Made by a program: the position numbers and the translations under genes. DNA of 64,000 nt, taken from positions 51,650 through 115,649 of the forward strand of contig MU626313.1 in NCBI GenBank assembly GCA_025603075.1. Direction: 5' to 3'. This document shows, piece by piece, positions 5,774 through 23,604 of the stretch. How positions within the stretch are numbered: the stretch's first letter is position 1; each line of letters starts with the position of its first letter. The notes under the pieces were generated by a model that was not told where the DNA came from, searched no databases, and saw nothing but the letters and a program-made list of their open reading frames with translations. Source of the DNA: Neoconidiobolus thromboides FSU 785 (Eukaryota; Fungi; Entomophthoromycota).

Positions 5774-7060
5774 TCAAAATAAATAAAAATTAGAAAAAGG
5801 AAGAATCTTTGAGAGTATATCAATATCAGACTTATTCACAGCTAAGTAATCAATTAGAAAAAACGTAGAATAAGCCATAGTATTTAAACAAGTTTCATTA
5901 GTTATAGTTAATTGTCCATGTTTAAACTTCACTTGAGTAACATTAGGGAATAGCCTTAATACATTAAAGAGTACTTCAATACTTAAATAACACTCTTTAA
6001 ACACTAATTTAGTGGTAGAGGGGTTTATTGTATTACTTGTCTCATTTCTACTACAAAAATAAGGCGCCGTTATGGACTCATTTTCATCACTTTCATTACT
6101 ATAGAAGACGACTGTTGAAACTGTTTTAAACTTCGATAGTCTTAATATCACATCTTCTAGTTCATTGTTAAGCCTGATATACACTTTATTCAAGTGAGAC
6201 ATTGAGTTAACAGTTATACCATCAATTAACTTTAAATCAATCAACCCTAAATTCTGGAACTCAAAATGATTTTTATTGCTAATGCAATCTAACGTAGCTA
6301 GCTTTTTAAACGGAACTTTTAATGTAGTCAAATTAGTTAAATCACCAAAATATTCTAACCTAAATATTCTACTAAACTTTCCATTAAGTACAAGCTTTTT
6401 TAAATTAGTGAATGACTTGGTTTTATTAAAATTGTATGGAACCACAAATCTAGTACATATTAAATATAAGGTGCCTAAATTCTGGAAGCTTTTTTGTAGT
6501 ATTTCTAAACCAAACAAATTGATGGCAAAACCTTGAATCTTTAATTTCTTTAATCTATTAGGGTTGAGATATTCAGCTACGAGAGAAATGGCTATCAATC
6601 CGGTTACTTTTAAATCAAACTCCTCCACCTGGAATAAGATGCTGGCAAAATTCAACATAGTAGCTTTATATTTTTCATCGATTACAAAGGTTATTTTTTT
6701 TAAAAATTTAAAAGTAAAATCAAATATTGTTCTTGAAAATGGATCATTTGAATTGAAATGAATAGTGAAATTAGATATATTAGTATATAAGTTCAAATCA
6801 AGCTCATGATTGCTCTTTATCATCAACCTCTTTACTTTATTTGGATACTTTTTTATTATCCTATCATGATCTTCCATTCGCTTTTTACTTGGTATATAGC
6901 TATAATATAATGAGTTTCTAAATAGAACACCATTTATTATTTTATAGATTGTTTTGTTAAGAGCCATAAGGTTGGACAATCCATTTAGATCTATATACAA
7001 GAATATTTCTTCTATTAAAACATCTGGTAAGTCATCTAGCTTTAGCTTGCTTTGGTTCAT
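5774..7060 (-). CDS. F-box / LRR-like protein, single exon
   Basis: N-terminal LDDLPDVLIEEIFLYI F-box motif and leucine-rich repeats; paralogous to 56703-58034. Confidence 0.75.
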   Translation of the reverse strand: MNQSKLKLDDLPDVLIEEIFLYIDLNGLSNLMALNKTIYKIINGVLFRNSLYYSYIPSKKRMEDHDRIIKKYPNKVKRLMIKSNHELDLNLYTNISNFTIHFNSNDPFSRTIFDFTFKFLKKITFVIDEKYKATMLNFASILFQVEEFDLKVTGLIAISLVAEYLNPNRLKKLKIQGFAINLFGLEILQKSFQNLGTLYLICTRFVVPYNFNKTKSFTNLKKLVLNGKFSRIFRLEYFGDLTNLTTLKVPFKKLATLDCISNKNHFEFQNLGLIDLKLIDGITVNSMSHLNKVYIRLNNELEDVILRLSKFKTVSTVVFYSNESDENESITAPYFCSRNETSNTINPSTTKLVFKECYLSIEVLFNVLRLFPNVTQVKFKHGQLTITNETCLNTMAYSTFFLIDYLAVNKSDIDILSKILPFSNFYLF

Positions 7061-7236: not shown

Positions 7237-7971
7237 ATGGTATATTTATTAAGTATAATAAATCAAGAAGGGATTGAAAGATATAACAAATTATTTCAGC
7301 CAGTAATTTTCAAAAAGGCCGAGGAGTATAATCAATTTAAAGATACTTTGTTTGATATACTATCTAATAGAGAAGAATATGAAGTAAATCTAATGTGAAA
7401 TTTAGTTTATTTTTATAAATATAAATAGGGTCCTATATTTGAATTTCATAATACTGAGAATATGATTGGTATATATATATATATTAAAGGTGATATTTAT
7501 CGTTTGTAGTCTATAAGAAGTTTGCTTCGTTATATTTCATGGCATATATTAATCCTAAAGAAGTAAGAGCTTTTATTTACTTTATTCAATTATTTACTTT
7601 CATAGAACGAATTCGAAGTATTGGACATTTTAAACCATATAATGGGTATATTATTATCATTTTTTTAAACTTGATTTTAATGATAAATAGAGACCTTAAG
7701 CATTTCGTTTGAAAGCTTTGTAAGAAAATTTTATTGTTAGCCATTTTTCAAGCTAATTTGTGTTTTTAGTGCGAATTAGATATATCCTTTTTTGAAAAAT
7801 AATCTATTACATAATCATAGTAAAAAGACTATTTCCTTAACCACTATATACATTATATATCACTTAGATAAGGTAAACTTAATTATTAGTGAGTTTTTCA
7901 ATATCAATGGGGAAATTCAAGCAACGGATCCTATTCAAATACTAACTTCAATTGAACAATTTGAGGAGTAA
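7237..7971 (+). CDS. Adaptor-protein (AP) complex sigma/small subunit, divergent; contains an AT-AC intron; absent from the ORF track
   Basis: Spliced: MVYLLSIINQEGIERYNKLFQ..ILSNREEYE|GPIFEFHNTENMI|VYKKFASLYFMAYINPKE|NEFEVLDILNHIM|ETLSISFESF|CELD|IIYHLDKVNLIISEFFNINGEIQATD..EQFEE*. The VYxxxASLYF, NE and CELD motifs are those of clathrin adaptor small chains. Confidence 0.85.
7782..7851 (+). other. U12-type (minor spliceosome) AT-AC intron, 70 nt
   Basis: 5' splice site ATATCCTTT at 7782, branch site TTTCCTTAAC at 7832-7841, terminal AC at 7850-7851. Removal restores CELD-IIYHLDKV; retention gives a stop. Confidence 0.9.
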
Positions 7972-8923
7972 CACAAACCCGATTAATATTTTGTAAGGTA
8001 AGGTTTTTTATAGTTTAAAGGCCGATATTCCAAATATTGTATATTCGCTTATAATTGTTAGTATATAGTGGGTTTGAAATTGTTTCTTACAAGACATTAA
8101 ACATTATATTTATAGATTTGATTAGAAAAGGGGTTTTTTTTTATGTGCCTTTTTTATCTGGTCATACATTCAATTATATGTATTTATAAAACTTGTAGTT
8201 ATTTTACCCTTATGAGTCAAGGAATTAAAGGTGGGGTTTAATAATTTGTTAGATATTACTATTTCATTTTATATTAGCAAATTTTAAGCGTTCTACCTTA
8301 TTAAAAGATAATTATTATACTTTAGTGTTTTTTCATATTATTGGTATTTGTTTTTTAATCATTTGTTATAGTTTTGTTTATTTAGTTATATTTGTTATTT
8401 TCAACTTTAATACAGCTCATTAATTAACTTTCAATTCGATTTATAGTAATCATGAAGTTTTTAAATATGCTACCATTCATTTTATTTCTAGAGTACAGTT
8501 ATTTATACTAACATTTAAAAAATAAACATAAAAAGATATTTTATATTCTAATAATTTTTATCATATATTTAAAGGATAAGAAAGGAAAGGAAGATGTAGA
8601 TCGGTATTTCAATTTTTTTAGCCCTCTTGGTACTCTTCCTGCTTTTTATGCTCTTGATAGCCATACACTTTTGTCCAGTTTATTGGAAATCTCTGAAAGT
8701 ATTCTCAGATCACTAAAAGACTCCTAGTTTAAGTATTTATTAAATATTTTAAGCAACAAAGAAGCAGTAGATTTATAGTCAAAGTCTGCACCTGTGCTTA
8801 TTAAGCCAAAACCTCGAAGTTTAATTACTTTAAGGTTTGAGAATAAAAATATAAAAGAAGAAAGTATTTAATTAGCGTATGAATTTCACGAATTTCATAT
8901 TGTTACTTCCATTAACAATATAT

Positions 8924-11182: not shown

Positions 11183-12523
11183 ATGGTGCAAAGTATTTTA
11201 GTTCAAGATCAAGAACCACCTCCATTAGTTGTAGTAGAAGGTTTTTTGGGCTCTAAAGACCGATGTTATTGGAACAACTTTCTAAAATGTCAATATAAAA
11301 TAAAAGGTAATCTTGTGAGAAGGGTTCTATTTGTAAGATTGGGCTCCTTATCTTCAGTACATGATAGATGCTGCGAATTATACTATCAACTTAAGGGCGG
11401 TACCGTTGATTTTGGTGAGGAGCATAGCTTACAAATGGGGCATAAAAGGTATGGAAGAACTTACCCAGGACTTTATCCAAAATGGTCTGATAAATATCCT
11501 TTGCATATACTCGGTCATTCTTTAGGTGGCTTAACATGTGTTCGTTTTCAGCGTATGCTAGCTGATTGCTATTTTGATACAGCCACGAGTGAAAATTGGA
11601 TTAAATCCGTCACTACTTTTTCTACTCCACATAGGGGCTCTACTTTACCGTATACAATTGGTGCTAGTGAAATAAACCCTATTGATGTCAATCCGTTCTC
11701 AGTTGGAGCTTTTCTTTACAGATTTGCATACATAATATCTTGGTTTGGGTTTCAAAATATTGACTTACAGCTAGATCATTGGGAATTATATAAATATCCA
11801 TTTTGGCAATTTTTGTATAACCTTATATTTAGATTTCAATTTGATAAAGGATTTGACAATGCCGCTTCTGATCTCACTTTAAGTTTTTGTGAAAATTATA
11901 ATCAAAAATATTCTAAAGAGTTCAAAAGCACTTATTATCGCTCATATTCCGCTTCCATGTCTTATAAAGTCAACCAATATTACTATCCCATTTTAAACTG
12001 GAGTAGACCATTTAGAACCATTTTATTTTCAATGATATTGGGTACTTATTCCTTTAAAGCAAAAGATAAAGTAGATGAAGAGTGGAGGGATAACGATGGG
12101 GTTATACCTGTGATATCTCAATATCACCCGAAATCATGTAAAGACCAAAATTGTATTCACTTAAAGTATAAAAAAGCCGAAAAAATCTTATACCAACCTT
12201 TGTTTAGTCAAATTCAACCTGGTATTTGGTATACAATTGAAATTGAAGATGCTTGTCATTTCAATGTCATTCGTTCTAAAAATAAAATATCCAAAGAACA
12301 TCAGGTGCTATTAATGGATATTTGGGTGTATTTAAATCAAATCGATACAAATACTAAGATACAAAAGGTTAAAAAGATACCAAAAGAGCTTAAGGTATCC
12401 TTTAGCGCTTTTAATAATATTCATTTATTGTCCCCTTTAAATTCTGGGCTAAGTCCTGCTTTCTACTCTCCTCTACTTTCACCACTTGTCAATCCTATTG
12501 TTTCGCCTATTTCTACATGCTAG
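11183..12523 (+). CDS. Alpha/beta-hydrolase lipase resembling bacterial family I.5/I.6 (Geobacillus/Staphylococcus-type); single exon
   Basis: DRCCELYYQLKGGTVDFGEEH..GHKRYGRTYPG, GHSLGG nucleophile elbow, TPHRGS, NDGVIP, candidate catalytic His in ACHF. Confidence 0.85.
   Translation: MVQSILVQDQEPPPLVVVEGFLGSKDRCYWNNFLKCQYKIKGNLVRRVLFVRLGSLSSVHDRCCELYYQLKGGTVDFGEEHSLQMGHKRYGRTYPGLYPKWSDKYPLHILGHSLGGLTCVRFQRMLADCYFDTATSENWIKSVTTFSTPHRGSTLPYTIGASEINPIDVNPFSVGAFLYRFAYIISWFGFQNIDLQLDHWELYKYPFWQFLYNLIFRFQFDKGFDNAASDLTLSFCENYNQKYSKEFKSTYYRSYSASMSYKVNQYYYPILNWSRPFRTILFSMILGTYSFKAKDKVDEEWRDNDGVIPVISQYHPKSCKDQNCIHLKYKKAEKILYQPLFSQIQPGIWYTIEIEDACHFNVIRSKNKISKEHQVLLMDIWVYLNQIDTNTKIQKVKKIPKELKVSFSAFNNIHLLSPLNSGLSPAFYSPLLSPLVNPIVSPISTC

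Positions 12524-18781: not shown

Positions 18782-23604
<4,823 letters not shown>

Follow-up and report, generated by a model that had tools for sequence, protein, structure and literature searches.

The locus and its gene

The window analysed here, a stretch of 64,000 nucleotides with a GC content of 26.6%, is part of scaffold MU626313.1 (assembly GCA_025603075.1) of Neoconidiobolus thromboides FSU 785. It carries on its forward strand a gene of the sigma-adaptin family, the small subunit of clathrin adaptor (AP) complexes, whose coding exons are separated by six introns (Table 1). Five of these six are GT-AG introns with 13–24% GC; the remaining one, at 7782-7851, begins with AT and ends with AC. 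Splicing was followed in eight public RNA runs that contain the locus (X1–X8; three studies, three coded organism labels), using Logan assembled contigs aligned to the window, the depths of which only approximate read counts. Run X3 also contains a contig that leaves the intron of the 3' untranslated region unspliced.

Table 1. Features of the sigma-adaptin gene, in window coordinates
Feature	Positions	Strand	Description and basis
Sigma-adaptin family gene	7237..7971	+	7 coding exons, 146 aa; splice model, identical public protein, Pfam
Exon 1	7237..7383	+	
U2-type GT-AG intron 1	7384..7428	+	45 nt; joint in X3, X6, X7, X8
Exon 2	7429..7468	+	
U2-type GT-AG intron 2	7469..7509	+	41 nt; joint in X3, X4
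Exon 3	7510..7562	+	
U2-type GT-AG intron 3	7563..7605	+	43 nt; joint in X1, X2, X3, X4, X5
Exon 4	7606..7645	+	
U2-type GT-AG intron 4	7646..7690	+	45 nt; joint in 8/8 runs
Exon 5	7691..7719	+	
U2-type GT-AG intron 5	7720..7769	+	50 nt; exon 5 sequence directly upstream of 7770 in contigs covering 7770-7881
Exon 6	7770..7781	+	12-nt micro-exon coding CELD, between upstream U2-type and downstream U12-type introns
U12-type AT-AC intron (very probable)	7782..7851	+	70 nt, phase 0 after residue D107; sequence, RNA joins, deposited protein
5' splice site ATATCCTTT	7782..7790	+	full U12-type consensus match
Branch-point motif TTCCTTAAC	7833..7841	+	candidate branch A 7839 or 7840
Terminal AC of AT-AC intron	7850..7851	+	sequence
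Exon 7	7852..7971	+	
3' untranslated region GT-AG intron	7996..8113	+	118 nt, cut ambiguous by 2 nt; joint 7995 to 8114 in X1, X2, X3, X5

The gene is present in the public annotation. With exon 1 as the only query, phmmer retrieved a 146-aa protein (P0001) that equals our spliced model letter for letter. NCBI lists it as 'snare-like protein [Neoconidiobolus thromboides FSU 785]', its gene range there corresponds exactly to window positions 7237-7971, and when the protein was mapped back to the locus the sole path ran through the AT-AC intron. The full agreement between deposited and spliced sequence means that the public model already includes this intron. A preliminary description of the DNA, made from its letters, had expected standard GT-AG gene callers to miss or mis-model the gene, an expectation not borne out in this genome.

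A second public model, on the reverse strand, is shorter than the ORF at its position. Positions 5774-7060 (-) hold an uninterrupted 428-aa ORF that carries an F-box at its N terminus (residues 8-47; Pfam 1.4e-06) and, in addition, LRR-like repeats. The corresponding public model spans 5774-6658 only (294 aa), starts at an internal Met and thereby omits the F-box, which is why an exact database look-up of the 428-aa ORF returned no record.

The identification of the host gene as a sigma adaptin, made in the preliminary description, is borne out by a match to Pfam Clat_adaptor_s (PF01217) over residues 1-145 (2e-22; 80.1 bits against a cut-off of 22.5). Exons 1 and 7, searched singly against Pfam, were too short to inform. 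Among solved structures, the best match was AP-3 sigma-1 (PDB 9c5c chain S, residues 2-142), and phmmer scores fell from 68 bits for AP-3 to 57 for AP-1, 47 for AP-2, 46 for AP-4, and 20 for zeta-COP. The AlphaFold model (pLDDT 91.4) superposes on the sigma subunits of AP-1, AP-2, AP-3, and AP-4 with TM scores of 0.86-0.92 and identities of 22-31%, showing no preference among them, and predicts the longin-like alpha/beta fold of AP small chains. We take the protein to be a sigma adaptin, on sequence scores probably of the AP-3 type.

Close relatives did not turn up in protein libraries. Apart from P0001 itself, scanning a 1.84-billion-protein representative library with exon 1 returned one unrelated protein of 1,777 aa (E 8e-4), and a word-indexed search of a 5.8-billion-protein library returned only AP-1-like proteins (23-44% identity) among the matches listed. 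Whether queried with the whole protein or with its residues 58-146, the word-indexed search gave only P0001 and one AP-1-like sequence, and a profile search had only AP-1-sigma-like proteins among the 120 matches listed. The closest full-length relative found was an AP-1-sigma-like protein (P0003), 34% identical overall and 44% identical within residues 58-146. Neither library search contained an orthologue, and a metagenome scan for relatives found none. Judged by these comparisons, the fungal sigma subunit is unusually divergent.

The AT-AC intron in sequence and in RNA

As marks of a U12-type intron, we took a 5' splice site of the form /[AG]TATCCTT, a branch motif TCCTTAAC that places the branch A ~10-15 nt ahead of the 3' splice site and lacks a pyrimidine tract, and excision in vivo at the predicted AT-AC boundaries. 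Intron 7782-7851 has both motifs. Its two candidate branch A's, 7839 and 7840, lie 12 and 11 nt before its last base, and the branch motif is followed by CACTATATAC, without a polypyrimidine tract. Its boundaries are those joined in RNA contigs, at 7781/7852. Excision connects CELD to IIYHLDKV in phase 0, and the unspliced frame reads CELDISFFEK and then stops, six codons past CELD. The motifs, termini, branch distance, spliced product, and early stop all agree with what the preliminary description had read from the DNA, and the junction it predicted is the one used in RNA.

The cut at 7781/7852 can be slid by +1 or +2 nt with the product unchanged. These placements, which would give TA..CA or AT..AT ends, were rejected, and the AT-AC placement was preferred because it is the only known splice-site class among the possible cuts. 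The phase of the intron counts against a U12-type reading, phase 0 being the rarest phase among minor introns (PMC10639083).

We evaluated how readily such motifs arise by chance. The octamer RTATCCTT occurs 5 times in the window against 8.0 expected from shuffles, and when 64-kb windows are simulated, roughly every second one contains a loosely defined combination of a 5' splice site with a branch motif and an AC/AG end (mean 0.75). The motif pair was therefore rejected as statistically significant by itself: being no commoner than chance, the motifs prove nothing alone. Intron 7782-7851 is the sole such combination in the window, and its removal restores the reading frame. This restoration, together with the RNA, is the decisive evidence for the intron. 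Elsewhere in the window, GTATCCTT octamers at 12395-12402 (+) and 21075-21082 (-) lack a suitably spaced branch motif and are not minor-intron candidates.

The RNA evidence is exact to the base. Contigs of all eight runs join exon 5, exon 6, and exon 7 precisely at 7781/7852, the full exon 5-6-7 join being seen in X1-X3, X5, and X6-X8. In X1 and X8, a contig lacks 7720-7851 apart from the 12 letters of exon 6, which stand between 7719 and 7852, and in X2, X3, X5, X6, and X7 the contig start at 7852 is preceded by 28 letters made up of the end of exon 5 and exon 6. One X8 contig runs continuously through exons 4, 5, 6, and 7. Contigs bearing the 7781/7852 join have had the neighbouring GT-AG introns removed as well.

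The runs also sample sequence variation at the locus. One organism label corresponds to a perfect match to the window, one includes a second allele or strain, and the third is ~2-3% diverged in exons. [quoted passage not shown] Under a uniform spread, the chance of all six falling between the motifs is ~0.05, so that the variant-free motifs give weak support to constraint on them. Runs X1, X2, and X4 of organism A carry, over window positions 7462-7690, a second allele, strain, or paralogue in which exon 4 has diverged. This second version has five changes inside the AT-AC intron and the same splice motifs.

Taking motifs, frame, and transcripts together, we are highly confident that the AT-AC intron at 7782-7851, which interrupts a divergent N. 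thromboides gene for a sigma adaptin, is of the U12 (minor-spliceosome) type.

Retention, mechanism, and competing explanations

Spliced and unspliced forms of the AT-AC intron coexist in most runs. Contigs covering 7770-7881 in X2, X3, X4, X5, X6, and X7 keep the whole intron and have lost intron 5, and the prior removal of intron 5 identifies them as derived from RNA rather than DNA. The depth of the retained-intron contig was 16.6 in X5, 44.6 in X6, and 50.8 in X7, against 11.9, 18.8, and 40.2 for the spliced-junction contig; X8 had a spliced-junction contig (34.8) and no retained-intron contig. Depth bins wholly within U2-type introns 2-5 were zero in the runs covering the flanking exons, as was the bin within intron 1 in every run except X8 (6.4), the only further exception being one unspliced X1 contig. 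Crude as contig depths are, they clearly show the AT-AC intron to be removed after upstream intron 5 and much less completely, late and/or inefficiently. Partly spliced contigs that keep it are common and consistent with slow minor splicing, and slow removal of minor introns is described as general in two studies (PMC4615840, PMC4066798).

Minor splicing follows an established model, from which the steps proposed for this intron are taken. The U11/U12 di-snRNP would pair with the 5' splice site ATATCCTTT and the branch site TTCCTTAAC, and U4atac/U6atac.U5 would join after it. [quoted passage not shown] We infer that splicing of the intron depends on minor snRNPs. Minor snRNAs and proteins are expected in the genome because an AT-AC intron is spliced. 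Within the 64-kb window, Rfam searches at gathering and E<=1 thresholds gave no match at all, with no U11, U12, U4atac, or U6atac gene and no snRNA of any kind.

Each step of this argument has to be weighed against other explanations. Were the 7781/7852 junction an artefact, it could have come from an assembly error, from template switching by reverse transcriptase, or from a processed paralogue without the segment. The data are assembled contigs and not raw reads, and two bases (AT) are common to both ends of the deleted segment, both of which leave room for such an origin. A 2-nt repeat is, however, too short for recurrent template switching at one site. Eight runs, three studies, and two sequence variants all yield this one junction, and the adjacent GT-AG introns have likewise been removed from the contigs that show it. 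Moreover, its excision restores a full-length sigma-adaptin fold. An artefact is accordingly exceedingly improbable. If the junction is genuine, the intron might still be removed by the major (U2-type) spliceosome, in which case it would be uninformative on the minor one. The absence of minor snRNAs from the 64-kb window is compatible with this, and U2-dependent AT-AC introns are reported to exist (PMC1557818). Against it, retention of the AT-AC intron greatly exceeds that of its five U2-type neighbours. U2-type AT-AC introns are not known to carry the U12-type 5' splice site and branch motifs. Removal by the major spliceosome is therefore very unlikely.

A more serious alternative accepts the intron as real and treats its retention as the regulated or main outcome, the gene chiefly giving rise to a transcript that is degraded or to a truncated product of 113 residues, with the intron as a brake on expression. 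Retention that equals or exceeds splicing by depth in X5, X6, and X7 and is absent in X8, hence high and variable between samples, speaks in favour of this view. The contig depths behind this pattern are crude, though, and slow minor-intron removal, described as general (PMC4615840, PMC4066798), need not be regulatory. In addition, Larue and Roy found proliferation-linked control to be absent in Rhizophagus (PMC10639083). Retention as the regulated or main outcome is unlikely, though the least unlikely of these alternatives.

Minor introns in fungi and in other sigma-adaptin genes

NCBI taxonomy places N. thromboides in Entomophthoromycota, Entomophthoromycotina, in keeping with the early-diverging fungal host that had been proposed from the DNA. 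Classifications that recognise Zoopagomycota put Entomophthoromycotina there too. Basidiobolus has been placed in Zoopagomycota by Larue and Roy (2023), who counted 249 minor introns in Basidiobolus meristosporus, 205 in Rhizophagus irregularis, and 0 in Dikarya (PMC10639083). Minor snRNAs had been reported in Zygomycota and Chytridiomycota, with Rhizopus and Phycomyces having minor snRNAs and a few U12 introns (PMC2846911). That Dikarya lost minor splicing while some early lineages kept it, a point on which the preliminary description relied, therefore agrees with the literature (PMC10639083, PMC2846911).

The minor introns of Rhizophagus, Basidiobolus, Rhizopus, and Phycomyces resemble the one described here in coming from non-Dikarya fungi, in their consensus motifs, and in the evidence for their splicing. 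The published surveys of fungal minor introns differ in that Neoconidiobolus and Conidiobolus are unnamed in their main text (PMC10639083, PMC2846911). In the literature searched, we found no paper linking Conidiobolus or Neoconidiobolus to U12 or minor splicing, and nowhere were the sigma gene and its intron 7782-7851 described as minor-type.

Intron 7782-7851 is an ordinary instance of a phenomenon known in early-diverging fungi, and its gene already has a correct annotation. Its mildly unusual points are only the preceding 12-nt micro-exon and the high retention. Current views are unaltered, as minor splicing outside Dikarya is established and the public gene model is right. The result adds a transcript-verified minor intron for an Entomophthoromycotina species unnamed in the main text of the published fungal surveys, and a spliced AT-AC intron would amount to indirect proof of a working minor spliceosome in N. 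thromboides. The gene is also very short, with five major introns of 41-50 nt, a 12-nt micro-exon, and a highly retained 70-nt minor intron, and would serve as a handy minigene in which to compare minor with major splicing for order and efficiency.

The preliminary description had also named AP sigma genes as known hosts of minor introns in animals. The mouse and human tables of MIDB list AP1M1, AP1M2, AP2A1, AP2A2, AP4E1, and AP4M1 as minor-intron genes (PMC6717393). Mouse Ap4s1 is the sole sigma gene in these tables, from which the AP1S, AP2S, and AP3S genes are absent (PMC6717393), so that the statement is weakly supported. No link of AP3S1 or AP4S1 to minor introns was found in the main texts of the literature searched. 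The Ap4s1 minor intron has GAT before GTATCCTTT and a branch motif TTCCTTAA, and is flagged mouse-only (PMC6717393). It resembles the fungal intron in being U12-type and in following an exon that ends in GAT, and differs in its GT-AG subtype, its length of 7.6 kb, and its restriction to mouse. Unlike Ap4s1, the fungal protein scores nearer to AP-3 sigma than to AP-4 sigma. The GAT common to the two upstream exons is suggestive at the level of sequence.

Intron positions were compared with those of AP-1 sigma genes from two sponges, Halichondria and Oscarella, and an oomycete, Pythium. None of the three has an intron between ELD and I, and there is therefore no evidence that the position is ancestral. 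The three genes have a conserved phase-0 intron before VCELD, one codon upstream of fungal U2-type intron 5. In all, the sponge and oomycete genes share introns at three identical positions (one after Met1, a phase-2 site within YK|RY, and the phase-0 site before VCELD), which are very old introns. None of these positions exactly matches any of the six fungal introns.

A more far-reaching interpretation would have the minor intron between ELD and I be an ancient sigma-adaptin intron, shared with mouse Ap4s1 and surviving in a fast-evolving fungal subunit, in which the 12-nt micro-exon forces an ordered hand-over from major to minor splicing. We regard this as distinctly improbable; if true, the sigma gene would offer a compact natural system in which to study how the major and minor spliceosomes interact.

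Among known proteins, AP-3 sigma (PDB 9c5c chain S and its relatives) is the best full-length sequence match and has the same fold, although its identity with the fungal protein is only ~30%. The intron itself compares closely with the U12-type AT-AC introns of animals and plants (e.g. MIDB, PMC6717393). It shares with them ATATCCTTT, TTCCTTAAC, a short distance from branch to 3' splice site, and AT-AC ends, and like them it is a single, retention-prone minor intron among several major ones. It differs from them in being 70 nt long, in its 21% GC context, in its phase 0, and in following a micro-exon of 12 nt.
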